From assembly GCF_902459465.1 (NCBI RefSeq), contig NC_047062.1:24056001-24120000 (forward strand): a DNA stretch of 64,000 nucleotides, read 5' to 3'. The first letter of the stretch is position 1. Each line of letters opens with the position of its first letter. The notes beneath the pieces are model-generated. The model made no database searches, was not told the DNA's origin, and worked only from the letters and a program-made list of their open reading frames with translations. The DNA comes from Asterias rubens. Taxonomy: Eukaryota. This document shows positions 564 through 19,197 of the stretch, piece after piece. A program made the translations under genes and the position numbers.

Positions 564-672
564 TCAGGCTCTTCAACTCTATGGTGAGGTTATACACACA
601 CACAATGTATTTGACCTTGGCAAAATTAGCGGTCTAGGTACATGTATGCAGGGGTTAGGTTCTATTGTTTAC

Positions 673-1262
673 CTGAGAGTCTGGCAGCAGCGTAACTACA
701 CGTCCAGGCTGAAAAAGAAACACACACAAAACATTGTAAGCTAAACTTGAAAATTTACTAATAGAAATAGGGTGGTGTTGAGTGTTTGAACTACAACATA
801 GAAATTGTTTAGTAGCTGAGGTGACATTGAGGGTCAAACTCATCAAAGACAATAGCCATGTTAAGTGTAACCTTCATTATTTTTAACTTGAAAGTTGAAT
901 TGAATGGCAGGTACATTTAGTATGTAATTCAAAACTGAATGACCATAAAACTAAGTTGTAGACGTAGGTAGTACCTCCATGGGCTGTTGGCATGGTAGGT
1001 TGGTGCTGTATAAAAATGACGAGTCATCCTCATTTCTCTACCGACTGCGATTGGTCATGGATCCGTGGATCCGTATTGGATGGGATTATTTATATTGTAT
1101 AAACGGCAAAGAAACGAGTGAGCTTACCTTCCTTGGGTTTCCCCTGTGATCTGGGCTTCCTTGCCAAAATCGTCTTGCATATCCATCGATGTATCCTGCT
1201 ACTTTTCGTTGGTAAGGAAAGTTCACTTTCCATATCAATGATCCGTAGCCGAAAGCCCACAT
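673..1262 (-). CDS. CHAC2: Glutathione-specific gamma-glutamylcyclotransferase CHAC2-like, exons 1-2 (1262-1128, 708-673); remainder lies outside the window
   Basis: [45 protein letters not shown]|[12 protein letters not shown] matches the ChaC N-terminus (FGYGSL, RRFWQ.S.DHRG, PGRVVTL); GT-AG introns in phase 0. Confidence 0.93.
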
Positions 1263-1303
1263 AACCGTGTCCTTTTTGAGAGTTTTCTGAGGTAGAGTGT
1301 TGT

Positions 1304-1445
1304 ACCAGACTGAAGTGAGCACCAAATTTGGGCCCAACACCAAATTTGGTGATGGCAAAAAAATTTGGTGCTAGCACCAAATTTCGATATAACTGTCGAC
1401 GACCGTCATTACCCGTCGAAGACAGTGCGGAAGGATTGTACACGC
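1304..1445 (+). repeat. Left terminal (non-tandem) TIR domain with nested palindromes
   Basis: Reverse complement of 17479-17620 with no difference seen by eye; perfect palindromes CACCAAATTTGGTG (1338-1351) and AAATTTGGTGCTAGCACCAAATTT (1361-1384). Confidence 0.9.
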
Positions 1446-4400
1446 GTAAGGTATGGGTAGATTCAAAGCCAAGAGTTCTATCTTAATTGGGCAATATTAT
1501 TAATTTTTATTTCATAAATCTATTCCTCATACCCCTGGCTAAATCAGATTAGCGCCCCAGTGTTTGAAGTCTGCTAATTAGCTTAGCCCAATTAATTTAG
1601 TCAATGAAGAATATACGAATTTTTGTACTGTATGCGCTGTATGCGTAAGGTATGGGCAATTACAAAGCCAAGAGTTCCATCTTAATTGGAAAAATTTATT
1701 AATTTTTAGTTCATAAATCTATTCCTCATACCCCTGGCTATATCAGATTAGCGCCCCAACTTGTTAAGTCTGCTAATTAGCTCAGCCCAATTAATTTAAT
1801 AAGGGAAGAACTTGCTAGTTTTTGTACTTTATACGCTGTTTATATGCTATGCAAAGAACAAGCGTATAGGTACGGGCATATACAAAGCCAAGAGTTCCAT
1901 CTTAATTAGCAAAAATTATTAATTTTTATTTCATAAATCTATTCCTCATACGTCTGGCTATATAAGCCCGGCGCCCCAATGTGTTAAGTCTTCTAATTAG
2001 TTCAGCCCAATTAATTTAATAAGGGAAGAATTTACGAGTTTTTCTACTTTTTACGCTGTACATTATGCTGTACACAAAGAACAAGCGTAAGATATGGGCA
2101 ATTACAAAGCCAAGAGTTCCATCTTAATTGGAAAATATTATTAAATTTTATTTCATAAATCTGTTTCTCATATCCCTGGCTATAATAAGCCCGGCGCCCC
2201 AATGTGTTAAGTCTTCTAATTAGTTCAGCCCAATTAATTTAATAAGGGAATAATTTACGAGTTTTTCTACTTTATACGCTGTACATTATGCTATACACAA
2301 AGAACAAGCGTAAGGTATGGGCAATTACAAAGCCAAGAGTTCCATCTTAATTAGAAAATATTATTAATTTTTATTTCATAAATCTATTCCTCATACCTCT
2401 GGCTATATAAGCCCGGCGCCCCAATGTGTTAAGTCTTCTAATTAGTTCAGCCCAATTAATTTAATAAGGGAAGAATTTACGAGTTTTTCTACTTTTTACG
2501 CTGTACATTATGCTATACACAAAGAACAAGCGTAAGATACGGGCAATTACAAAGCCAAGAGTTCCATATTAATTGGAAAATATTATTAATTTTTATTTCA
2601 TAAATCTATTCCTCATACCTCTGGCTATATAAGCCCGGCGCCCCAATGTGTTAAGTCTGCTAATTAGCTCAGCCCAATTAATTTAATAAGGGAAGAACTT
2701 GCTAGTTTTTGTACTTTATACGCTGTTTATATGCTATGCAAAGAACAAGCGTCTAGGTACGGGCATATACAAAGCCAAGAGTTCCATCTTAATTGGAAAA
2801 TATTATTAATTTTTATTTCATAAATCTATTCCTCATACCTCTGGCTATATAAGCCCGGCGCCCCAATGTGTTAAGTCTTCTAATTAGTTCAGCCCAATTA
2901 ATTTAATAAGGGAAGAACTTGCTAGTTTTTGTACTTTATACGCTGTTTATATGCTATGCAAAGAACAAGCGTCTAGGTACGGGCATATACAAAGCCAAGA
3001 GTTCCATCTTAATTGGAAAATATTATTAATTTTTATTTCATAAATCTATTCCTCATACCTCTGGCTATATAAGCCCGGCGCCCCAATGTGTTAAGTCTGC
3101 TAATTAGCTCAGCCCAACTAAATTAATCAGGGAAGATTTTACGAATTTGTGTACTTTTACGCTATACTTATATAACAAGCGCGTAAGGTATGGGAAATTA
3201 CAAAGCCAAGAGTTCCACCTTAATTGGAAAATATTATTAATTTTTATTTCATCAAATATGTTTCCCATACCCCTGGCTATATATGCCCAGCGCCCCAATG
3301 TGTTAAGTCTGCTAATTAGTTCAGCCCAATTAATTTAATAAGGGAAGAATTTACGAGTTTTTCTACTTTTTACGCTGTTTATATGATATGCAAAGAACAA
3401 GTGTATAGGTACGGGCAATTACAAAGCCAAGAGTTCCATATTAATTGGACAATATTATAAATTTTTATTTCATAAATCTGTTCCTCATACCCCTGGCTAT
3501 ATAAGCCCGGCGCCCCAATGTGTTAAGTCTTCTAATTAGTTCAGCCCAATTAATTTAATAAGGGAAGAATTTACGAGTTTTTCTACTTTTTACGCTGTAC
3601 ATTATGCTATACACAAAGAACAAGCGTAAGATACGGGCAATTACAAAGCCAAGAGTTCCATATTAATTGGAAAATATTATTAATTTTTATTTCATAAATC
3701 TGTTCCTCATACCCCTGGCTATATAAGCCCGGCGCCCCAATGTGTTAAGTCTTCTAATTAGTTCAGCCCAATTAATTTAATAAGGGAATAATTTACGAGT
3801 TTTTCTACTTTTTACGCTGTTTATATGATATGCAAAGAACAAGTGTATAGGTACGGGCAATTACAAAGCCAAGAGTTCCATATTAATTGGACAATATTAT
3901 TAATTTTTATTTCATAAATCTGTTCCTCATACCCCTGGCTATATAAGCCCGGCGCCCCAATGTGTTAAGTCTGCTAATTAGCTCAGCCCAATTAATTTAA
4001 TAAGGGAAGAACTTGCTAGTTTTTGTACTCTATACGCTGTTTATATGCTATGCAAAGAACAAGCGTATAGGTACGGGCATATACAAAGCCAAGAGTTCCA
4101 TCTTAATTAGCAAAAATTATTAATTTTTATTTCATAAATCTATTCCTCATACCTCTGGCTATATAAGCCCGGCGCCCCAATGTGTTAAGTCTTCTAATTA
4201 GTTCAGCCCAATTAATTTAATAAGGGAAGAATTTACGAGTTTTTCTACTTTTTACGCTGTACATTATGCTATACACAAAGAACAAGCGTAAGATATGGGC
4301 AATTACAAAGCCAAGAGTTCCATCTTAATTGGAAAATATTATTAATTTTTATTTCATAAATCTGTTCCTCATACCCCTGGCTATATAAGCCCGGCGCCCC

Positions 4401-7400
4401 AATGTGTTAGGTCTTCTAATTAGTTCAGCCCAATTAATTTAATAAGGGAAGAATTTACGAGTTTTTCTACTTTTTACGCTGTACATTTAATGCTATACAC
4501 AAAGAACAAGCGTAAGATATGGGCAATTACAAAGCCAAGAGTTCCATCTTAATTGGAAAATATTATTAATTTTTATTTCATAAATCTGTTCCTCATACCC
4601 CTGGCTATATAAGCCCGGCGCCCCAATGTGTTAGGCCTTCTAATTAGTTCAGCCCAATTAATTTTATAAGGGAAGAATTTACGAGTTTTTCTACTTTTTA
4701 CGCTGTACATTATGCTATACACAAAGAACAAGCGTAAGATATGGGCAATTACAAAGCCAAGAGTTCCATCTTAATTGGAAAATATTATTAATTTTTATTT
4801 CATAAATCTGTTCCTCATACCCCTGGCTATATAAGCCCGGCGCCCCAATGTGTTAAGTCTTCTAATTAGTTCAGCCCAATTAATTTAATAAGGGAAGAAT
4901 TTACGAGTTTTTCTACTTTTTACGCTGTACATTATGCTATACACAAAGAACAAGCGTATAGGTACGGGCATATACAAAGCCAAGAGTTCCATCTTAATTA
5001 GCAAAAATTATTAATTTTTATTTCATAAATCTGTTCCTCATACCCCTGGCTATATAAGCCCGGCGCCCCAATGTGTTAAGTCTTCTAATTAGTTCAGCCC
5101 AATTAATTTAATAAGGGAAGAATTTACGAGTTTTTCTACTTTTTACGCTGTACATTATGCTATACACAAAGAACAAGCGTAAGATATGGGCAATTACAAA
5201 GCCAAGAGTTCCATCTTAATTGGAAAATATTATTAATTTTTATTTCATAAATCTGTTTCTCAAACCCCTGGCTATATAAGCCCGGCGCCCCAATGTGTTA
5301 AGTCTGCTAATTAGCTCAGCCCAATTAATTTAATAAGGGAAGAACTTGCTAGTTTTTGTACTCTATACGCTGTTTATATGCTATGCAAAGAACAAGCGTA
5401 TAGGTACGGGCATATACAAAGCCAAGAGTTCCATCTTAATTAGCAAAAAAATTTAATTTTTATTTCATAAATCTATTCTTCGTACCTCTGGCTATATAAG
5501 CCCGGCGCCCCAATGTGTTAAGTCTTCTAATTAGTTCAGCCCAATTAATTTAATAAGGGAAGAATTTACGAGTTTTTCTACTTTTTACGCTGTACATTAT
5601 GCTATACACAAAGAACAAGCGTAAGATACGGGAAATTACAAAGCCAAGAGTTCCATCTTAATTGGAAAATATTATTAATTTTTATTTCATAAATCTGTTC
5701 CTCATACCCCTGGCTATATAAGCCCGGCGCCCCAATGTGTTAAGTCTTCTAATTAGCTCAGCCCAATGAATTTAATAAGGGAAGAATGTACGAGTTTTTT
5801 TACTTTTTACGCTGTACATTATGCTATACACAAAGAACAAGCGTAAGATACGGGCAATTACAAAGCCAAGAGTTCCATCTTAATTGGAAAATATTATTAA
5901 TTTTTATTTCATAAATCTGTTCCTCATACCCCTGGCTATATAAGCCCGGCGCCCCAATGTGTTAAGTCTTCTAATTAGTTCAGCCCAATTAATTTAATAA
6001 GGGAAGAATTTACGAGTTTTTCTACTTTTTACGCTGTACATTATGCTATACACAAAGAACAAGCGTAAGATACGGGCAATTACAAAGCCAAGAGTTCCAT
6101 CTTAATTGGAAAATATTATTAATTTTTATTTCATAAATCTGTTCCTCATACCCCTGGCTATATAAGCCCGGCGCCCCAATGTGTTAAGTCTGCTAATTAG
6201 CTCAGCCCAATTAATTTAATAAGGGAAGAACTTGCTAGTTTTTGTACTCTATACGCTGTTTATATGCTATGCAAAGAACAAGCGTATAGGTACGGGCATA
6301 TACAAAGCCAAGAGTTCCATCTTAATTAGCAAAAATTATTAATTTTTATTTCATAAATCTGTTCCTCATACCCCTGGCTATATAAGCCCGGCGCCCCAAT
6401 GTGTTAAGTCTGCTAATTAGCTCAGCCCAATTAATTTAATAAGGGAAGAACTTGCTAGTTTTTGTACTCTATACGCTGTTTATATGCTATGCAAAGAACA
6501 AGCGTATAGGTACGGGCATATACAAAGCCAAGAGTTCCATCTTAATTAGCAAAAATTATTAATTTTTATTTCATAAATCTATTCTTCGTACCTCTGGCTA
6601 TATAAGCCCGGCGCCCCAATGTGTTAAGTCTTCTAATTAGTTCAGCCCAATTAATTTAATAAGGGAAGAATTTACGAGTTTTTCTACTTTTTACGCTGTA
6701 CATTATGCTATACACAAAGAACAAGCGTAAGATACGGGCAATTACAAAGCCAAGAGTTCCATCTTAATTGGAAAATATTATTAATTTTTATTTCATAAAT
6801 CTGTTCCTCATACCCCTGGCTATATAAGCCCGGCGCCCCAATGTGTTAAGTCTGCTAATTAGCTCAGCCCAATTAATTTAATAAGGGAAGAACTTGCTAG
6901 TTTTTGTACTCTATACGCTGTTTATATGCTATGCAAAGAACAAGCGTATAGGTACGGGCATATACAAAGCCAAGAGTTCCATCTTAATTAGCAAAAATTA
7001 TTAATTTTTATTTCATAAATCTATTCCTCATACCTCTGGCTATATAAGCCCGGCGCCCCAATGTGTTAAGTCTTCTAATTAGTTCAGCCCAATTAATTTA
7101 ATAAGGGAAGAATTTACGAGTTTTTCTACTTTTTACGCTGTACATTACGCTATACACAAAGAACAAGCGTAAGATACGGGCAATTACAAAGCCAAGAGTT
7201 CCATCTTAATTGGAAAATATTATTAATTTTTATTTCATAAATCTGTTCTTCATACCCCTGGCTATATAAGCCCGGCGCCCCAATGTGTTAAGTCTTCTAA
7301 TTAGTTCAGCCCAATTAATTTAATAAGGGAAGAATTTACGAGTTTTTCTACTTTTTACGCTGTACATTATGCTATACACAAAGAACAAGCGTAAGATACG

Positions 7401-8615
7401 GGAAATTACAAAGCCAAGAGTTCCATCTTAATTGGAAAATATTATTAATTTTTATTTCATAAATCTATTCTGTATACCTCTAGCTAAGTCAGATTAGCGC
7501 CCCAACTTGTTAAGTCTGCTAATTAGCTCAGCCCAATTAATTTAATCAAGGAAGAATTTATGAGTGTTGATACTGTATGCGCTGTATGCGTAAGGTAGGG
7601 GAAAATAAAAAGGCAAGAGTTCCATCTTAATTGGAAAATATTATTAGTTTTTATTTCATAAATCTGTTCCTTGTACCTTTGGCCATGTCAGATTAGCGCC
7701 CCATTGTGTAACGTTTTCTAATGAGCTCAGCCCAATTAATCCAATTAGGGAAGAAATTGCGAATTCCGTACTGTTTATACGCTAATATGCATAATACATC
7801 ATGCGTAGGGTATAGGCAAAAACTAAACAAACGAATTCCATCTAACTTTGAAAATATTAATATTATTTATCTCATAAATGTGTTCCACATACCCATGGCT
7901 AAATCAATTTAGTACCTCGACGTGTTACCTTACCTAATTAGCTCAGCCCAATTAAATTAATAAAGAGAATCATTCATGAATTTCTTACTATACGTTGTAT
8001 GAACACACGCGTAAGGTATGGGCAAATACAAAGCCAAGAGTTCCATCTTAATTGGTAAATATGATTAATTTTTATTTCATAAATCTATTCTTTATACCTC
8101 TAGCTACGTCAGATTAGCGCCCCAACTTGTTAAGTCTGCTAATTAGCTCAGCCCAATTAATTTAATCAAGGAAGAATTTACGAATGTTGATACTGTATGC
8201 GCTGTATGCGTAAGGTAGGGGAAAATACAAAGCCAAGAGTTCCATCTTAATTGGAAATTATTATTAATTTTTATTTCATAAATCTGTTCCTCACACCCAT
8301 GGCTATATCAGATTAGCGCCCCAACTTGTTAAGACTGCTTATTAGCTCAGCCCAATTAAATTAATAAGGGAATAATTTACTAGTTTTTGTACTGTATAAC
8401 GCTATTAATATGCTATACAAAGAACAAGCGTAAGGTTTGGGCAAATAAAAAGGCAAGAGTTCCATCTTAATTGGAAAATATTATTAATTTTTATTTCATA
8501 AATCTGTTACTCATACCCCTGGCTATATCAGACTAGCGCCCCAACTTGATAAGTCAGCTAATTAGCTCAGCCCAATTAATTTAATCAGGGAAGAATTTAC
8601 TAGTTTTTGTACTGT
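1446..8615 (+). repeat. Left arm: ~33 tandem units of ~200-223 bp
   Basis: Anchor CAAAGCCAAGAGTTCC recurs at 2105, 2328, 2550, 2770, 2990 etc. (period 220-223); edge units more diverged. Confidence 0.95.
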
Positions 8616-8911
8616 AAGATGTAGCCACTTGCACGAACTTGTTCTAATATATGAAAAAGACATGTTACCCCTTCACAGAGAGTTTGCAGACGGTTTTTGC
8701 AAAAAAAAAAAAAATATGTAATAAAAAGCCTCTAAAATTAGCGAGGGAAAAATGGTCTAAAAGAGTCCGTCAGCCAGGTACTCAGGGAATATACCTAACG
8801 CCACCAACAAAAGAAATTAAATTTAAAGGTCTTTCAACGAATACGACAAATACAAGAATAAACACTAAAACATGCTCCCAAACGTAAAAATGTCAGTGAC
8901 CCCTCGCATGA

Positions 8912-10750
8912 ACCAACACAGCCAATCATGACGAAAAAGCCTATAAACACGAACACCGGCCATCACTTTTTCCAGTCGGCAAGGGCATATGTAACAACTC
9001 TGTTTCATGTTGGTGGGTATCATCAATCCAGGCTCTTTTTCCTGTTTACATAACAGTTCGTAGAACTGCAAGTCAAATTCCGAATTTAAACGCTTTCAAG
9101 CGTGAATTAATTCTTACTTTTGAAAAACTTAAAAACCAAGTGTGTCAAGCAGTTCCTTTCTATTCCGTTAAACAAAGTATTAGAACGTGTGCAAGATTTT
9201 GTTCAATAGATCCACTCCAACAGCAGGATGCAGCAGAATTTTTAACCTGTCATGAGGTTTGTAGCTTTTTCCATGATGCTGGTGTGTCGCCCTATATAAT
9301 TAGTAAACAGACACGGCGATGTGATCGATGTAAAGACATTTCCACAGTCAATACAAGGACCCCAATTTTGCCAGTAACAGCAATGGACCAAATAATAGAA
9401 TCTGGCATACGAGAGTATTTTCGCTCAAACGACTTGTGTAATGTTTGTAATCGGGGAGTAAGATATAACGAATCAGTAATAACCCTTGCACCTCAAATTG
9501 TCATTGTTCAATTAATGCGCTTTAGATGGGAAGACGGGAGAGCTTCAAAAGTATTGGACAATGTTTATGTGGAAGATGTAATTGATCTTACCCCACTTTG
9601 TGCAGATCAAACATCGAAATCCTTGTATCATTTAATATCAGTCGTGGTACACCGTGGAAACAGTGTTCAAAGTGGTCACTATGTTACTTATGTTAATGAT
9701 CGCATTAACCAGAGAAAAATATTGTATGATGATCATGAAGTTGACCAAGTGACTGACCAAGAATTTCAACAATCTGTTGATGAAGGCGCCTACATCCTCA
9801 TTTATGAAAAATGTCATGATTTAACCAAATATACTGATGAGCATGCAACAGATGGGGATTCGGCAACGCCTTCAGGTTCAAGTACCCAGCATCAAAACAA
9901 TGACAACCGTAACAATGCTCCTCTTAACAGTAAACATTTCTCAGTTACACCAAACGAAAAAGTCTTTGTTGAAAATGTGTGGGGTTACATTGACGAAAGT
10001 ATTGTACACAAAGATGCACTCAAATTAAAAACAAATAATGAAACTATTACTTTCTGCCATCTTGCCATACTCAATTTTCACATACCTAATACATTATTTC
10101 AAACCTTGCAGACGACTGGAACAGAATATATAAGGGGATGGACGAGTAATTTTTTTGTTGATTTTTACCTCCAGCAGTTAGCCGACAGCAATGAGGTTAC
10201 GTCAACCATTGGTGCACTTCTGTGTTCTGAAACACTGGCTATAGTTGATAGAAAAGAAAGTGTTTCAACTTACCGTTCAGTGAAGCGCAAATGTATACAT
10301 AACAATCGGTGGTGCGATTTGATACTCTGTCCCCTTTTGAAGAGCAACCATTTTGTATTGTACGTCATAGATCAAAATAAACAATGCATTTTGTCTTATG
10401 ATCCACTGCGTCCATCATTATTCACATCAATGCCAAAACACGCAAAAGCTTTTGCAGATTTTTTTTCTTCTGGTCTGAGCCTCGTTCACTGGGATAAACT
10501 ACCAAATATCATACAACCTGGAGGCAAGGTAGCAATAACAAATTCTACGTCGGTTTCTCAAAATGATTTTTCCGCATGTGGTCTGTATTGCTGCGTTTTT
10601 GCTGAAGAGGTCGCTTTGGGAAAACGAAAGGTGAGACACATTGATACAAGTGAAGAACTTAGATTATACTTAACAATGAACGTCATTCGTAGAGCTCACA
10701 TATTAGATGTCGGGCTAAAACAGCTGTTTGGTCAAAGTTTTCATAATTAG
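8912..10750 (+). CDS. Element cargo: USP (peptidase C19) domain fused to Ulp1/SENP-like (peptidase C48) domain; start codon uncertain
   Basis: Frame open from 8912. Cys box GICNNSVSCWWVSSIQAL (Cys 9008-9010), QQQDAAEFL, two CxxC pairs, APQIVIVQLMRF, His box VVVHRGNSVQSGHYVTY and YDD; then NHFVLYVID...YDPL and QNDFSACGLYCC. Confidence 0.82.
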   Translation, partial: TNTANHDEKAYKHEHRPSLFPVGKGICNNSVSCWWVSSIQALFPVYITVRRTASQIPNLNAFKRELILTFEKLKNQVCQAVPFYSVKQSIRTCARFCSIDPLQQQDAAEFLTCHEVCSFFHDAGVSPYIISKQTRRCDRCKDISTVNTRTPILPVTAMDQIIESGIREYFRSNDLCNVCNRGVRYNESVITLAPQIVIVQLMRFRWEDGRASKVLDNVYVEDVIDLTPLCADQTSKSLYHLISVVVHRGNSVQSGHYVTYVNDRINQRKILYDDHEVDQVTDQEFQQSVDEGAYILIYEKCHDLTKYTDEHATDGDSATPSGSSTQHQNNDNRNNAPLNSKHFSVTPNEKVFVENVWGYIDESIVHKDALKLKTNNETITFCHLAILNFHIPNTLFQTLQTTGTEYIRGWTSNFFVDFYLQQLADSNEVTSTIGALLCSETLAIVDRKESVSTYRSVKRKCIHNNRWCDLILCPLLKSNHFVLYVIDQNKQCILSYDPLRPSLFTSMPKHAKAFADFFSSGLSLVHWDKLPNIIQPGGKVAITNSTSVSQNDFSACGLYCCVFAEEVALGKRKVRHIDTSEELRLYLTMNVIRRAHILDVGLKQLFGQSFHN

Positions 10751-10799
10751 TGATCAAATCAAACACAATATGCTTTTTAATTAATCAAATATTATGTAA

Positions 10800-11830
10800 C
10801 AAGATAGATCTCTCGCTCTTGTAATTACCCATTCCATACGCAGCATGTGCTAGCGTATACTGAATAAATATGTGAAATCGTCTCTCGATTAACATGATAA
10901 CTTGTTTCTACTTAAGCTGGAACTCTTATTTGCCCATACCTTAGTAGGCATGTATTTAATAAAGAATATTAGCCCACGCAGTAGGAATTTGTGAGGTATT
11001 AATTTGGCTGAGCTAATTAACCAATGTTACATGGTATATAGGGTGACTAGTCGAATATTAGCTCCCCTCGGTATGGAAATTGAAAAACTAGTTTGTCAAC
11101 TTCCAATACCTCGGGAAGCTATTATCGACTAGTCACCCTCAAACCATATAGAGCAAGTTCAATCAACAGACTAAAGTTGACTACTGTTGACCATTTGGCG
11201 ATTTCGCCTGTTTGTGAATCTTCAATCTATTAAATAAATTTTGCTGAGCTAATTAGCCAATGTTACATGGTTTATTTAGGGTGACTAGTCGATTAGTAGA
11301 ACATTGACTATAGTGGTTGAAAAATGGTCGCTGATCGAACTTGCTCCATGTTATCTTTGTATAGTACATACCTCATACATATTCATGACCTAGAGTCGAG
11401 TTCTCATTGGTCCATTCATAACCAGGTGTTAATTTTGCTAATTACCAAGCGGTACGTGAGTATTCACGCAAGTGGTAGATGCGCATGACAAGTAATAGCT
11501 CCCCGGGAGCTATTCTACTTGTCATGCGCACTACCATTGCGCGACGTCATCCCTGGGCGATATTGATCGTGGCACCGTTTGTATACACGCGCACGAACAG
11601 CGCTCTCTAAGCGACATCCAACACATGAACAAACTTATAATGTGCATTTTGTTTCAAAGTCATCATTTTCTCTTGCACAAAACTCATGTTCCGGTAACTG
11701 AATATGTACGAAGTATAGTAAAACAAATAACATGATTTATTTCAGGTGACTAGTCGACGAGAGGCCCCCGAGGTATTGGGTAAACTTCCTATACCTATAG
11801 GGGAGCTAATATCGACTAGTCACCGTCAAA
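10800..11830. repeat. Degenerate inner right-arm zone with short palindromic cassettes
   Basis: Decayed arm-unit fragments (gctgagctaatta, ttgcccatacc) interleaved with hairpins at 11040-11139, 11473-11536 and 11745-11824. Confidence 0.6.
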
Positions 11831-14800
11831 CCATGTTTTGTATATAACAGCCAGGGGTGTGTGTTACAGATTTATGGATTAAAAAATTGTACCTTCTTTC
11901 TATTAAAAGATGGAACCATTGGCTTTGTATTTGCCCATTATGTTACACACGTATTAAGCATGGCGAATTAGAGCATACAATAGGAAATTCGTGTTGTGAA
12001 TTTAATTGGGTTGAGCTAAGTAGCCGATGATTAACACGTATGAGCACTAATCTGATATTGGTTTCAGATTTATGGATTAAAACATTGTACTATTTTTCAA
12101 TGAAGATGGAACCATTGGCTTTGTATTCGCCCATACCTTAAGCATGTATTTATGTATAGGCAAATAGCACATGCAGTAAAGTATGAAGTTCGTTAATTAT
12201 AGACTTGTTTACATTAATTGGGCTGATTTCTGATCAGAGTTGTGAAAAGATTTGAGAAATAAAACATGATTATTTCTTCTAAAGAAGATGGAACTCTTGC
12301 CTTTGTAATTACCCATTTAATACACAGCTTGCAGCTTGTATTAGCCCAACGAGTAGAAAATTCGTAATTTTTCCTCTTGACTAAATTAATTGGGCTGAGC
12401 TAATTATCAAACGTAAACACGTCGGGCGCTAATCTTCCAGGGGTATGATGATATTTTTTAATTCGTAATCTCTTCCTTGATTAAATTAATTGGGCTGAGC
12501 TAATTAGCAGACTTAACAAGTTGGGGCGCTAGTCTGATATAGCCAGGGGTATGAGGAATAGATTTATGAAATAACAATTAAAAATATTTTCCAATTAAGA
12601 TGGAACTCTTGGCTTTGTAATTGCCCCTTACTTACGCGCTTGTTATCTATAAGTATATACAGCGTATATATACAGTACAAAAACTCGTAAATTCTTCCCT
12701 TATTAAATTAATTGGGCTGAGCTAATTAGCAGACTTATCAAGTTGGGGCGCTAGTCTGATATAGCCAGGGGTATGAGGAATAGATTAATGAAATAAAAAT
12801 TAATAATATTTTCCAATTAAGATGGAACTCTTGGCTTTGTAATTGCCCATTACTTACGCGCTTGTTATCTAAGTATATATAGCGTATATATACAGTACAA
12901 AACTAGTAAATTCTTCTATTATTAAATTAATTGGGCTGAGCTAATTAGCTGACTTATCAAGTTGGGGCGCTAGTCTGATATAGCCATGGGTGTGAGGAAC
13001 AGATTTATGAAATAAAAATTAATAATAATTTCCAATTAAGATGGAACTCTTGGCTTTGTAATTGCCCATTACTTACGCGCTTGTTATCTATAAGTATATA
13101 CAGCGTATCTATACAGTACAAAAACTAGTAAATTCTTCCCTTATTAAATTAATTGGGCTGAGCTAATAAGCAGACTTATCAAGTTGGGGCGCTAGTCTGA
13201 TATAGCCAGGGGTATGAGGAATAGATTTATGAAATAAAAATTAATAATATTTCCTAATTAAGATGGAACTCTTGGCTTTGTAGTTGCCCATACCTTACGC
13301 TTGTTCTTTGTGTATAGCATATAAAATGTACAGCGTATAAAGTACAAAAACTCGTAAATTCTTCGCTGATTAAATTAATTGGGCTGAGCTAATTAGCAGA
13401 CTTATCAAGTTGGGGCGCTAATCTGATATAGCCAGGGGTATGAGGAATAGAGTTATGAAATAAAAATTCATAATATTTTCCAATTAAGATGGAACTCTTG
13501 GCTTTGTAATTGCCCATTACTTACGCGCTTGTTATCTAAGTATATACAGCGTATATATACAGTACAAAAACTAGTAAATTCTTCCCTTATTAATTTAATT
13601 GGGCTGAGCTAATTAACAGTCTTAACAAGTTGGGGCGCTAATCTGATATAGCCAGGGGTTTGAGGAATAGATTTATGAAATAAAAATTAATAATATTTTC
13701 CAATTAAGATGGAACTCTTGCCTTTTTATTTGCCCAAACCTTACGCTTGTTCTTTGTATAGCATATTAATAGCGTTATACAGTACAAAAACTAGTAAATT
13801 ATTCCCTTATTAATTTAATTGGGCTGAGCTAATTAGCAGTCTTAACAAGTTGGGGCGCTAATCTGATATAGCCATGGGTGTGAGGAACAGATTTATGAAA
13901 TAAAAATTAATAATATTTTCCAATTAAGATGGAACTCTTGGCTTTGTAATTGCCCATACCTTACGCTTGTTCTTTGTGTATAGCATAATGTACAGCGTAA
14001 AAAGTAGAAAAACTCGTAAATTCTTCCCTTATTAAATTAATTGGGCTGAACTAATTAGAAGACCTAACACATTGGAGCGCCGGGCTTATATAGCCAGGGG
14101 TATGAGGAACAGATTTATGAAATAAAAATTAATAATATTTTCCAATGAGAATGGAACTCTTGGCTTTGTAATTGCCCATATCTTACGCTTGTTCTTTGTG
14201 TATAGCATAATGTACAGCGTAAAAAGTAGAAAAACTCGTAAATTCTTCCCTTATTTAATTAATTGGGCTGAACTAATTAGAAGACCTAACACATTGGGGC
14301 GCCGGGCTTATATAGCCAGGGGTATGAGGAACAGATTTATGAAATAAAAATTAATAATATTTTCCAATGAGAATGGAACTCTTGGCTTTGTAATTGCCCG
14401 TATCTTACGCTTGTTCTTTGTGTATAGCATAATGTACAGCGTAAACAGTAGAAAAACTCGTAAATTCTGCCCTTATTAAATTAATTGGGCTGAACTAATT
14501 AGAAGACTTAACACATTGGGGCGCCGGGCTTATATAGCCAGAGGTATGAGGAATAGATTTATGAAATAAAAATTAATAATTTTTGCTAATTAAGATGGAA
14601 CTCTTGGCTTTGTATATGCCCGTACCTATACGCTTGTTCTTTGTGTATAGCATAATGTACAGCGTAAAAAGTAGAAAAACTCGTAAATTCTTCCCTTATT
14701 AAATTAATTGGGCTGAACTAATTAGAAGACTTAACACATTGGGGCGCCGGGCTTATATAGCCAGGGGTATGAGGAACAGATTTATGAAATAAAAATTAAT

Positions 14801-17478
14801 AATATTTTCCAATTAAGATGGAACTCTTGGCTTTGTAATTGCCCATATCTTACGCTTGTTCTTTGTGTATAGCATAATGTACAGCGTAAAAAGTAGAAAA
14901 ACTCGTAAATTCTTCCCTTATAAAATTAATTGGGCTGAACTAATTAGAAGACTTAACACATTGGGGCGCCGGGCTTATATAGCCAGGGGTATGAGGAACA
15001 GATTTATGAAATAAAAATTAATAATATTTTCCAATTAAGATGGAACTCTTGGCTTTGTAATTGCCCATATCTTACGCTTGTTCTTTGTGTATAGCATAAT
15101 GTACAGCGTAAAAAGTAGAAAAACTCGTAAATTCTTCCCTTATTAAATTAATTGGGCTGAACTAATTAGCAGACTTAACACATTGGGGCGCTGGGCATAT
15201 ATAGCCAGGGGTATGGGAAACATATTTGATGAAATAAAAATTAATAATATTTTCCAATTAAGATGGAACTCTTGGCTTTGTAATTGCCCATATCTTACGC
15301 TTGTTCTTTGTGTATAGCATAATGTACAGCGTAAAAAGTAGAAAAACTCGTAAATTCTTCCCTTATTAAATTAATTGGGCTGAACTAATTAGCAGACTTA
15401 ACACATTGGGGCGCTGGGCATATATAGCCAGGGGTATGGGAAACATATTTGATGAAATAAAAATTAATAATATTTTCCAATTAAGGTGGAACTCTTGGCT
15501 TTGTAATTTCCCATACCTTACGCGCTTGTTATATAAGTATAGCGTAAAAGTACACAAATTCGTAAAATCTTCCCTGATTAATTTAGTTGGGCTGAGCTAA
15601 TTAGCACACTTAATACTCTGGGGCGCTAATCTGACATAGCCAGAGGTATGAGGAATAGATTTATGAAATAAAAATTAATAATATTTTCCAATTAAGATGG
15701 AACTCTTGGCTTTGTATATGCCCGTACCTAGACGCTTGTTCTTTGCATAGCATATAAACAGCGTATAAAGTACAAAAACTAGCAAGTTCTTCCCTTATTA
15801 AATTAATTGGGCTGAGCTAATTAGAAGACTTAACACATTGGGGCGCCGGGCTTATATAGCCAGAGGTATGAGGAATAGATTTATGAAATAAAAATTAATA
15901 ATATTTTCTAATTAAGATGGAACTCTTGGCTTTGTATATGCCCGTACCTAGACGCTTGTTCTTTGCATAGCATATAAACAGCGTATAAAGTACAAAAACT
16001 AGCAAGTTCTTCCCTTATTAAATTAATTGGGCTGAGCTAATTAGTAGACTTAACACTATGGGGCGCTAATCTGATATAGCCAGGGGTATGAGGAACATAT
16101 TCATGAAATAAAAATTAATAATATTGTCCAATTAATATGGAACTCTTGGCTTTGTAATTGCCCGTACCTATACACTTGTTCTTTGCATATCATATAAACA
16201 GCGTAAAAAGTAGAAAAACTCGTAAATTCTTCCCTTATTAAATTAATTGGGCTGAACTAATTAGCAGACTTAACACATTGGGGCGCCGGGCTTATATAGC
16301 CAGGGGTATGGGAAACAGATTTATAAAATAAAAATTAATAATATTTTCCAATTAAGATGGAACTCTTGGCTTTGTAATTGCCCATATCTTACGCTTGTTC
16401 TTTGTGTACAGCATAATGTACAGCGTAAAAAGTAGATAAAATTGGAAAATTCTTCCCTTATTAAATTAATTGGGCTGAACTAATTAGAAGACTTAACACA
16501 TTGGGGCGCCGGGCTTATATAGCCAGAGGTATGAGGAATAAATTTATGAAATAAAAATTAATAATATTTTCTAATTAAGATGGAACTCTTGGCTTTGTAA
16601 TTGCCCATACCTTACGCTTGTTCTTTGTGTATAGCATAATGTACAGCGTATAAAGTAGAAAAACTCGTAAATTATTCCCTTATTAAATTAATTGGGCTGA
16701 ACTAATTAGAAGACTTAACACATTGGGGCGCCGGGCTTATATAGCCAGGGATATGAGAAACAGATTTATGAAATAAAATTTAATAATATTTTCCAATTAA
16801 GATGGAACTCTTGGCTTTGTAATTGCCCATATCTTACGCTTGTTCTTTGTGTACAGCATAATGTACAGCGTAAAAAGTAGAAAAACTCGTAAATTCTTCC
16901 CTTATTAAATTAATTGGGCTGAACTAATTAGAAGACTTAACACATTGGGGCGCCGGGCTTATATAGCCAGACGTATGAGGAATAGATTTATGAAATAAAA
17001 ATTAATAATTTTTGCTAATTAAGATGGAACTCTTGGCTTTGTATATGCCCGTACCTATACGCTTGTTCTTTGCATAGCATATAAACAGCGTATAAAGTAC
17101 AAAAACTAGCAAGTTCTTCCCTTATTAAATTAATTGGGCTGAGCTAATTAGCAGACTTAACAAGTTGGGGCGCTAATCTGATATAGCCAGGGGTATGAGG
17201 AATAGATTTATGAACTAAAAATTAATAAATTTTTCCAATTAAGATGGAACTCTTGGCTTTGTAATTGCCCATACCTTACGCATACAGCGCATACAGTACA
17301 AAAATTCGTATATTCTTCATTGACTAAATTAATTGGGCTAAGCTAATTAGCAGACTTCAAACACTGGGGCGCTAATCTGATTTAGCCAGGGGTATGAGGA
17401 ATAGATTTATGAAATAAAAATTAATAATATTGCCCAATTAAGATGGAACTCTTGGCTTTGAATCTACCCATACCTTAC
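11830..17478 (-). repeat. Right arm: ~26 tandem units, inverted relative to the left arm
   Basis: GGAACTCTTGGCTTTG recurs every ~200-224 bp; reverse complement of the left-arm unit. Confidence 0.95.
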
Positions 17479-17620
17479 GCGTGTACAATCCTTCCGCACT
17501 GTCTTCGACGGGTAATGACGGTCGTCGACAGTTATATCGAAATTTGGTGCTAGCACCAAATTTTTTTGCCATCACCAAATTTGGTGTTGGGCCCAAATTT
17601 GGTGCTCACTTCAGTCTGGT
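17479..17620 (-). repeat. Right terminal TIR domain
   Basis: Reverse complement of 1304-1445. Confidence 0.9.
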
Positions 17621-17878
17621 GAGTGTTGTTGTTAGTTTGTTCGTTTTTAAATAGCGCCACCAATAAACCAGAATTGTTTTGAAGCGCCCTCTTGCGTCCA
17701 AAACGAATGCTCTTCGTACATTACATAAGTTGCATTGAATCCCCTGTCCTTCATGCACTGGTACGAAATTTTCTTCCTCCAGGACGTAAATAGTGTTCAA
17801 AATACACAGAAAATCACTGCCGGCAGAATGGAACAAAGTTGAAGTTTTTGTTTTATGCTGTAAATTGGATTTGCCGAG
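17621..17878. promoter_or_regulatory. Probable divergent promoter / 5' UTR segment shared by CHAC2 (-) and UQCC3 (+)
   Basis: Lies between the right TSD and a GAG|GTAAGT donor at 17879 that can splice to an acceptor at 18298 just upstream of the UQCC3-like ATG; promoter role inferred from gene geometry. Confidence 0.55.
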
Positions 17879-18319
17879 GTAAGTGTAAAACTAATTTGTA
17901 AATTCGATTACTGACACACTACTGCTGAGCAGCTGACTGGGTTGTCAATCTGAATCTGTATTGACTGACTGCGTGTTTTCCCTGAACATGCTAAATGGCA
18001 TCTATTTTTTTTTTTGGGGGGGGGGGGGGGGGGTTTCCTATAAACTCGTTTCCTATAAAATCTATGTGATTAAAATAACGTTGTATTCTTTAAAAAGTAA
18101 CATAGATGTGATGTTTCCATTAGGCATTATTAATATTATTAGGAACTTTTGGCGTAGTACTACTACTACTTACTAGACAGTTCAGAGATTCTATTTTACT
18201 GTAGTGGATTGCGGTTCAGTTGCAGCTGCTATTTATTGACGGATATACAAAAGAAAGTTATTGTCATTTTTGGTTGAAATTGTTGTAATCTTTTACAGGT
18301 GTACACACCGTGGTTCATC

Positions 18320-19197
18320 ATGTCCGGCAAGCTTACAAGAATGTTATTAAGTCTAGGTCTTATTGGAGCGTCTGGTGCAGTTGGTTGGGGACTTCTCAAA
18401 CTTGTCTCACCAAGTCCTGAAGTTCTACTGAAGGTATTTTAACATTTCCCAAAGAATGGAGGTAGAACTACCTTCATCCTCAAAGTCGGGATGTTTTTGC
18501 CAAAATGTTCTGCGAACTGACCACAGAGACCGAGACTCTTGAATTGCTCACCTGCAACCCCTACATGTAAATTAAAGTAGGATAATGGCCAATTTCAAAA
18601 CAGGGCGTCCACAAGACACCAAGATACCCCTGCTGGATTTTGGGGGAAAAGTGTGTCCAACTTTGAATTGCTCACCTGCAACCCCCACATGTAAATTAAA
18701 GTAGGATAATGGCCAATTTCAAAACAGGGCGTCCACAAGACACCAAGATACACCTGCTGGATTTTGGGGAAAAAGTGTGTCCAACTTTGCTGGCAAATTA
18801 AACAATGGTTGTCAAAATTGATACTAAGTGGTGTAGTTACTAAACATTTACAGATAAAACAGGGTGTCCAAAAGACACTCCTCTGTCACACACAGAGGTA
18901 CTTTTCTAGTTAAATACATGTACTGTGTTTTTAAGTTTGTTCACATTAAAAACTTTGTTTTTAGGTAAATTTAATGAACACTTAAAAGTATTGTATGAGT
19001 ACGTTAGCAAGCATCATTCACTGTCATATAATTCTGTGCTTTACACTCCATTGATTTGTCAACAGCAACTTCCAGAAAACAACCCATCAGTAATGAGGGA
19101 GTCTAAACAGAAAACCCAGGAGTGGATGGATGCATTGAAAGCTGCTGCAGACGACCCCAACCCAATCTATAAGTCATTCGGGGCCAAGAAAAACTGA
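18320..19197 (+). CDS. UQCC3: UQCC3-like complex III assembly factor, 81 aa (exons 18320-18433, 19066-19197)
   Basis: MSGKLTRMLLSLGLIGASGAVGWGLLKLVSPSPEVLLK|QLPENNPSVMRESKQKTQEWMDALKAAADDPNPIYKSFGAKKN; Gly-rich TM then SP...LP....P pattern as recalled for UQCC3; phase-0 GT-AG intron. Confidence 0.75.
18537..18788. repeat. Tandem duplication, 2 x ~124 bp, in the UQCC3 intron
   Basis: gaattgctcacctgcaaccc...gtgtgtccaacttt occurs at 18541 and 18665. Confidence 0.9.

Follow-up and report, generated by a model that had tools for sequence, protein, structure and literature searches.

A 16,317-bp element (1304-17620) was analysed in a 64-kb window of Asterias rubens DNA, the window being the whole stretch of contig NC_047062.1 from position 24,056,001 to 24,120,000. 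We read it, with a probability of about 0.85, as a very recently inserted, non-autonomous member of the Foldback-type Mutator elements (Mutator-like elements, MULEs), in which a protease-encoding open frame is the remnant of the element's own transposase gene. An earlier note on this DNA, made from the letters alone, had proposed a recent insertion of foldback/Mutator type that was mobilised in trans. This proposal is supported by the 9-bp target site duplication, the arms, the perfect 881-nt ends and the fold predicted for the transposase of relatives. The same note took the proteases for a cargo comparable to that of the plant KAONASHI elements. Here the analysis departs from it, as both a sister copy (L006) and distant relatives identify the proteases as a transposase tail.

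Boundaries, ends and arms of the element

Direct reading of the junctions revealed the 9-mer GAGTGTTGT at 1295-1303 and again at 17621-17629. The match is exact and cannot be extended to 10 bp at either side; with the positions fixed, the odds of a chance 9-bp match are ~4e-6. Both copies adjoin reverse-complementary ends, ACCAGACTGAAG... on the left and ...CTTCAGTCTGGT on the right, and the terminal inverted repeat (1304-2184 versus 16740-17620) is 100% complementary over 881 nt. The exact duplication and the inverted ends described before were therefore both recovered. Elements of the Foldback group are recognised by duplications of 8-10 bp (typically 9) and by a terminal motif with subterminal tandem repeats in long inverted repeats; the element has the exact 9-bp GAGTGTTGT and ends of this build. 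The window contains no N letters. The features are listed below with strand and basis.

1128..1262, minus strand: first coding exon of a ChaC-family gene (open reading frame (ORF) list; Pfam ChaC, E 3e-18)
1295..1303, no strand: left target site duplication GAGTGTTGT (direct reading; same as 17621-17629)
1304..1443, plus strand: left terminal non-satellite segment of 140 bp, starting ACCAGACTGAAG (Tandem Repeats Finder, TRF; flank junctions in public runs)
1444..8616, plus strand: left arm, ~33 tandem units of 199-224 bp (mode 222) with a 442-bp dimer periodicity (TRF, anchor scan, unit spacing)
8617..8911, plus strand: relic of the transposase tail (~90 last codons) and linker, frameshifted (three-frame translation; alignments)
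8912..10750, plus strand: open frame of 612 codons with USP/UCH (C19) and Ulp1 (C48) (Pfam, family alignment A2, ORF list)
10751..12462, no strand: non-coding inner segment with degenerate satellite-like units and hairpin modules (common to sister copies)
12463..17484, minus strand: right arm, ~23 tandem 222-bp units, inverted (TRF, anchor scan, unit spacing)
17485..17620, minus strand: right terminal non-satellite segment, mirror of 1304-1443, ending ...CTTCAGTCTGGT (end reading, inverted-repeat match)
17621..17629, no strand: right target site duplication GAGTGTTGT (direct reading)

Tandem arrays with a period of 222 bp and a dimer pattern of 442-445 bp (TRF) were detected in both arms, in agreement with the inverted arms of ~220-bp units reported earlier. 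A 25-nt anchor taken from the 222-bp unit occurs 32 times on the plus strand and 23 times on the minus strand, and nowhere else in the window. The left arm measures 7.3 kb, as had been stated. The ~5.8 kb given for the right arm is reached only when degenerate units from 11870 are counted (~5.75 kb), the clean units amounting to 5.2 kb. Units 1-4 inward from each terminus match in register at 99.5-100% between the arms. Further inward, variants common to both arms appear in shuffled order and in unequal unit numbers, a pattern that fits mirror-image arms which may have been altered later by unequal exchange. In the left terminal segment an 18-bp palindromic motif, AGCACCAAATTTGGTGCT, is repeated ~3.7 times (1318-1384), and the whole segment (1304-1443) is likely the transposase-binding end. 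The non-array core extends over 8617-12462 (3.8 kb); the "~2-kb unique core" of the earlier note is thus approximate and corresponds to the gene remnant within it (8617-10750, ~2.1 kb).

Origin of the protease frame

The frame at 8912-10750 matches Pfam UCH (E 1e-23) and Peptidase_C48 (E 4e-5) in one reading frame, so that the predicted cysteine-protease fusion was confirmed. It is also true of the window copy that it carries no transposase. The window frame was aligned with relatives that are 18-20% identical in the protease part (alignment A2). The invariant columns of the USP part comprise the Cys of the Cys box, a QQD..EF block, two CxxC pairs, the His box GHY and DD, and the window has all of them. 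In the Ulp1 part the His column is invariant; the window also keeps the Asp and the Gln/Cys of Q.D..(S/A)CG.

Relatives of this frame were found in the databases solely in metagenome or run assemblies. One of them, the Logan contig L006, encodes a member of the window protein's own 90% cluster. Its positions 1-80 correspond to the 222-bp satellite of the window (90-92% identical), positions 81-1504 (1.42 kb) have no counterpart in the window copy, and positions 1505-4012 are 98.7% identical to window positions 8616-11109. The extra 1.42 kb extends the same frame upstream, one stop codon excepted, and the frame contains, in this order, YLDATGS, LIMIDGS, HQCASH and NRTQGIIEKS, then the linker, USP and Ulp1. 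Pieces of the L006 protein were aligned (hhalign) with profile A1, which was built from the transposase regions of 26 relatives with the medaka protein P0008 as first sequence. The E-values were 9e-62 (positions 182-465) and 2e-39 (496-707 of 727). According to these alignments, the window retains just the last ~90 profile positions, frameshifted, together with the protease tail. Since in L006 one frame runs from the DDE core into USP-Ulp1, and distant relatives have the same fusion to the transposase, the two domains are the C-terminal part of the family's own transposase gene and not captured cargo.

The deletion breakpoint lies against the satellite at 8616/8617. DNA alignments to the window start exactly at 8616-8617 both for L006 and for contig L001, which belongs to P0002, a relative of 985 aa that is 48% identical to the window frame and extends 420 residues further at the N-terminus. 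Between the satellite and 8912, ~300 nt can be read only with frame switches, and three stops directly precede 8912 in the open frame (three-frame translation). No in-frame ATG, GTG or TTG is present at 8912-9140, and hence there is no start ahead of the USP Cys box. Two lesions are private to the window, an insertion of 2 nt at 8942 and a loss of 3 nt at 8826. At its 5' side the window copy is deleted further than L006; it has no start codon and keeps the protease tail of the transposase gene.

Two further sister copies, L002 and L007, originate from two different marine metagenome assemblies. They share the left breakpoint and the whole core with the window, and L007 continues into the inverted right arm. 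Over the gene remnant, identity to the window is 99.5% for L002, 99.8% for L007 and 99.6% for L006. Private lesions were seen in each (two 5-nt deletions at 9409-9420 in L002, a 1-nt deletion at 9551 in L007, one in-frame stop in L006). The ratios of nonsynonymous to synonymous differences between copies (6:2, 4:1 and 2:1; small numbers) look neutral, in line with neutral decay of the frame in this deletion class. The inner segment (10751-12462), in which degenerate units begin at ~10800 and become clearer from 11870, is 99.7-99.9% identical in L002 and L007. Hairpin modules of ~100 bp with GGGTGACTAGTCGA ends are found amid its degenerate satellite-like units (11040-11139, 11279-11292 and 11744-11826). 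This hairpin motif occurs five times in the inner segment and nowhere else in the window; it is present in the sister copies as well, and the modules are therefore old within the family.

A truncated USP-Ulp1 frame might nevertheless be expressed and useful, by way of an upstream exon or an internal start, either as a protease supplied in trans or after domestication. Its 612 codons are open with all catalytic motifs present, and termini of the element occur in RNA-derived contigs of the public run X5. However, no in-frame start precedes the Cys box, three stops and a frameshifted relic lie just upstream, L002 and L007 are frameshifted inside the domain, and the substitutions look neutral. At the low divergence of these young copies (0.2-0.5%), no selection is needed for a frame to be still open. 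The frame thus seems best explained by youth and not by selection, and we regard continued use of it as unlikely.

Less likely still is that a MULE captured a host cysteine-protease gene as passenger cargo in the manner of KAONASHI or Pack-MULEs. Such a capture would account for a copy without transposase domain whose sole long frame is a protease fusion, and Ulp1-like genes are documented in plant MULEs (cited in PMC2836005). It is contradicted by L006, where the protease sequence shares one frame with the DDE/CxxH core, by the relatives with 18-20% identity in the protease part, which keep the order transposase-USP-Ulp1, and by the frameshifted remains of a transposase tail directly upstream in the window. 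Pack-MULE and KAONASHI elements are defined by a host-derived gene separate from the transposase; USP-Ulp1, fused to the transposase in relatives from several animal groups, does not fit this definition, and the cargo explanation is largely refuted. In a deleted element, the stump of the transposase gene itself can be mistaken for cargo, and this corrects the former reading.

Superfamily placement, relatives and known systems

Pfam detected no family in the region upstream of USP, either in P0002 or in full-length relatives. Pfam MULE was found in 1 of the 26 A1 members, weakly (E 8e-4), and a profile search of Protein Data Bank (PDB) sequences with the transposase region gave nothing meaningful. 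As the sequence libraries were almost silent, the region was modelled for fold comparison. In A1 the columns D (in DATG), D, C and H (CxxH), N and E are invariant or near-invariant. The AlphaFold model of the transposase region from this alignment (P0008) had a predicted local distance difference test score (pLDDT) of 84 and a predicted template modelling score (pTM) of 0.72. Among Swiss-Prot models, the best fold match by far was the Drosophila NOF-FB 120.7 kDa protein (P16320; E 3e-29, template modelling (TM) score 0.68, 649 residues), followed by the K. lactis alpha3 protein, the FAR1/FHY3 family, ZSWIM proteins and IS256-family transposases. The best PDB match was the IS256-family transposase ISCth4, with weaker matches to P-element, Hermes, Transib and RAG1. 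A WRKY DNA-binding domain matched the model with a probability of 0.99 over 56 columns, and the distant relatives in A1 carry a conserved NPYC..F..H...C.F..C block, a candidate for the N-terminal WRKY/GCM1-type (FLYWCH, FAR1-like) zinc-finger DNA-binding domain of the Foldback group. NOF-FB also gives its name to the best ESM Atlas cluster, in which Peptidase_C48 is carried by 45% of the members and PHD by 34%. AlphaFold DB clusters included entries named transposase, MULE transposase domain, USP domain, ubiquitin-like protease domain and PHD-type domain. A DDE signature of the MULE/IS256 type with (C/D)x2H after the second D is present in L006 (DATGS, MIDGS, CASH, IIEKS) and absent from the window copy. 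On the basis of the modelled fold, together with the 9-bp duplication and the repeat-built arms, the family is assigned to the Mutator superfamily and, within it, to the Foldback branch. A foldback of the P superfamily (Galileo type, with 7-8 bp duplications and a THAP P-like transposase) was rejected, the duplication being 9 bp and the fold match to the P-element transposase weak (E 2e-3, versus 3e-29 for NOF-FB).

When P0002 was searched against 1.84 billion representative proteins, 3,645 matches were obtained, many of which cover its first 400 residues within proteins of 900-2,100 aa. The transposase region is followed by UCH and then by Peptidase_C48 in five tested relatives (P0017, P0067, P0026, P0033 and P0126), and seven further relatives have partial versions of this layout. 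Outside the five, relatives have UCH only, C48 only, C48 with PHD, or a Macro domain. A PHD finger is found in P0007, P0017, P0033, P0083 and P0152, and not in the truncated copies of the window's family. The order transposase-USP-Ulp1 is kept in proteins with 18-20% identity in the protease part. Named relatives belong to medaka, killifish, many other teleosts and the sea cucumber Apostichopus japonicus; further relatives come from metagenomes.

We tentatively suggest that the tandem of a USP deubiquitinase and an Ulp1 deSUMOylase could be a conserved functional part of the transposase in a Foldback-type Mutator clade of several animal groups, although the case for this falls somewhat short of even. 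A plausible role would be the stripping of host ubiquitin or SUMO marks, in repair signalling or in SUMO-dependent silencing, the latter being speculation. A 2010 proposal by Bao and colleagues assigns the ubiquitin-pathway proteases on transposases to post-transposition repair (PMC2836005). A fixed USP-Ulp1 tail on Foldback-type transposases across distant animals offers a testable handle on a role of ubiquitin/SUMO in DNA transposition, an idea raised in the same paper.

Several relatives deserve separate mention. In P0106, P0182, P0183 and P0270 a Macro (ADP-ribose binding or erasing) domain and PHD stand in place of USP/Ulp1, and transposase tails seem to swap between different modification-removing domains. 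P0017 looks intact, with PHD, transposase, USP and Ulp1 in one 6.3-kb ORF (2,110 aa) on the 253-kb contig L005. No inverted arms were detected within 10 kb of it on this contig, and a 319-bp tandem repeat lies 1.4 kb downstream (L005:17764-18556); P0017 could be a domesticated or immobilised copy. L008 is a decayed relic among miniature inverted-repeat transposable elements (MITEs). A sister family of the P0002 type (L003:1-592 and 5355-6516; L004) has inverted tandem arms of ~213 bp whose sequence is unrelated to the window's. Its transposase is 5'-truncated and starts ~100 nt from the arm, so that the deletion is of the kind seen in the window copy. In these elements, deletions that run from the left arm's inner edge into the gene seem to be recurrent.

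Drosophila FB elements produce a 9-bp target duplication. FB-NOF (FB4, P16320) shares with the family described here this duplication and the long inverted arms of tandem repeats, its NOF protein is the best structural match to the transposase region, and one fish relative, P0199, is named after NOF-FB by NCBI. It differs in that sequence identity to the NOF protein is just 17% and in its short repeats (tens of bp, versus a unit of 222 bp here). The USP and Ulp1 domains after the transposase in the family here may be a further difference.

Rehavkus elements, a second near neighbour beside FB-NOF, combine a 9-bp duplication with a PHD finger and a minisatellite before the 3' inverted repeat, and their listed hosts are arthropods and annelids only (PMC6446971, Table 1). 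Rehavkus-1_TC and -3_TC and the Rehavkus-like elements of Tribolium are described as foldbacks with satellite repeats in their inverted termini, up to 50 monomers and >11 kb (bioRxiv 10.1101/2024.12.02.626372). The arm size observed here, for which the earlier note knew of no described element, therefore has a published precedent. PHD in several relatives and the satellite termini resemble Rehavkus, as compared by description only. In the family here both arms carry tandem arrays, and USP and Ulp1 are unmentioned for Rehavkus (PMC6446971; bioRxiv 10.1101/2024.12.02.626372).

Muta1 of Aedes aegypti, a Phantom-type MULE described as a "type 2 foldback", likewise has a terminal motif with subterminal tandem repeats, 8-9 bp duplications and non-autonomous deletion derivatives moved in trans. 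In contrast to the element in the window, it is 3.2 kb long, its inverted repeat is 145 bp and built of 12-bp repeats, and protease domains are missing (PMC5499845). Tm1, a Mutator/Foldback family of root-knot nematodes, has composite inverted repeats of variable length made of tandem motifs, 9-bp duplications, members that are MITE-like, deleted or transposase-bearing, and empty paralogous sites. It differs by its 14-bp repeats, its size of ~1 kb, a FLYWCH-type transposase and the lack of proteases (PMC3169594).

A paper of 2010 reported Ulp1 and PHD domains on animal Mutator transposases, with an alignment of the two domains from Ginger1 and Mutator, and noted a C19 ubiquitin hydrolase fused to an IS5-like transposase in Trichomonas (PMC2836005). 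Ulp1-bearing Mutators (KAONASHI/VANDAL-type; MuDR of Hydra and lancelet) and Ginger1 with its Ulp1, OTU or PHD tails thus also associate a protease for ubiquitin-like proteins with a DNA transposase (PMC2836005). The family here differs from them in having a C19 USP followed by a C48 Ulp1 after a Foldback-type transposase, all in one frame, and in KAONASHI the ULP gene is separate from the transposase gene. Mutator-superfamily foldbacks with satellite arms, including termini of >11 kb, Ulp1/PHD on animal Mutator transposases and C19 on an IS5-like transposase are consequently already published. In searches across 8.4 million papers, no description was found of a USP-then-Ulp1 tandem on a Foldback-type transposase, of a transposase with both USP and Ulp1, or of a foldback with Ulp1.

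Mobility, polymorphism and insertion site

Logan contigs of four public runs were compared with window positions 600-1460. In runs X1, X3 and X5 the terminus was joined to several different upstream flanks at 1303-1306. As it stands next to many different flanks, the family is multicopy. From the flank to 1296-1353, the summed contig depth changed from 306 to 4,300-5,300 in X1, from 25 to 3,600-7,500 in X3 and from 378 to 570-730 in X5; the jumps in X1 and X3 lie within a range of 10-300 fold. Depth over the first ~50 nt of the terminus was far above that over the next 100 nt. Contigs diverge from the window at 1343-1354, after 40-50 nt of terminus, so that further subfamilies, probably MITE-like, seem to have just the extreme end in common with the window. 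The additional copies that the earlier note expected were hence seen as termini at many flanks, but the expected master, a transposase-bearing copy with this terminus, was not.

One 544-nt contig of X3 spans 822-1303 and then runs on for 62 letters unlike those of the element. In X1, the run that represents this stretch best, a contig stops exactly at 1303 with a depth of 618, twice the 306 of its left neighbour, and this doubling suggests a branch between filled and empty alleles, from which it would be expected. The insertion appears to be polymorphic. The predicted empty site would read ...GGTAGAGTGTTGT directly followed by TGTTAGTTTG, with one copy of the 9-mer. The empty site that the earlier note named as a check is thus suggested by the contig geometry of X3 and X1, but exact matches to it were not obtained (see below). 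The window insertion is very recent: with copies 0.2-0.5% apart, perfect 881-nt ends and a perfect duplication, a Foldback/Mutator family has moved very recently in this genome.

Having no transposase, the window copy can be mobile solely in trans. The autonomous form would encode, in one frame, a WRKY-like zinc finger, the DDE core with CxxH, a linker, USP and Ulp1, with inverted arms of 222-bp tandem repeats on either side of its gene. From the window copy, everything 5' of the last ~90 transposase codons was lost in a deletion that directly adjoins the left arm at its inner end. In Muta1 the terminal motif and subterminal repeats drive binding, more repeats raise excision, and duplications are 8-9 bp long (PMC5499845). 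By analogy, a full-length transposase made elsewhere may bind the terminal motif and the repeated subterminal sites and cut at 1304 and 17620, which would produce double-strand breaks with a hairpin on the flanking DNA. The 3' OH ends would then be joined to the target with a 9-bp stagger. If more repeats lead to more binding and excision here as well, arm growth would be favoured.

Several points weigh against the reading as a whole. The empty allele is read from contig geometry and not letter by letter, and an exact scan of Joint Genome Institute (JGI) metagenome contigs returned 0 matches for the predicted empty site and 0 for the 28-nt terminus. A full-length autonomous copy of the family, with an N-terminal DNA-binding domain and the same termini, was not found. 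L006 is itself 5'-truncated and has one in-frame stop, and a search for a longer close relative of its protein yielded just 48-60% relatives of similar truncated length and no master copy. The 612-codon frame has all its catalytic motifs intact, and a use of it, for instance via splicing, is conceivable. Finally, the lengths given for the arms are those of the assembly. Long inverted satellite arrays mis-assemble easily, but a palindromic mis-join of satellite-rich reads, the least probable of the explanations considered, was rejected because the exact 9-bp duplication sits at ends that bound a multicopy repeat, because the independent metagenome contigs L002 and L007 reproduce the junction of left satellite and core, the whole core and the inverted right arm, and because the flanks form a coherent divergent promoter once the element is removed.

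The insertion point lies 41 nt upstream of the ATG of the ChaC-family gene (1262). A contig of run X5 has 709-1127 spliced out (GT..AG, minus strand), X5 evidently being RNA, and the RNA-derived ChaC-family contig of this run ends at 1291, 12 nt from the insertion point. On the other side, the ORF 18925-19197 (plus strand) resembles UQCC3 weakly (Pfam, E 2.5e-3, short of the cut-off). The element splits a short divergent promoter between the ChaC-family gene and this weakly UQCC3-like ORF (1128-1303, 17630-19197). Insertion near the 5' ends of genes is a habit of Mutator elements (PMC6446971). The family brings kilobases of satellite DNA into gene promoters, which provides a concrete case of transposon-borne satellite seeding with possible regulatory disruption. 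Neither the UQCC3-like ORF nor a 52-aa ORF within the terminus had an identical protein on record. A 124-bp unit is present twice in tandem at 18539-18789 (copies 97% identical), close to the UQCC3-like exon and shortly after the right end of the element.

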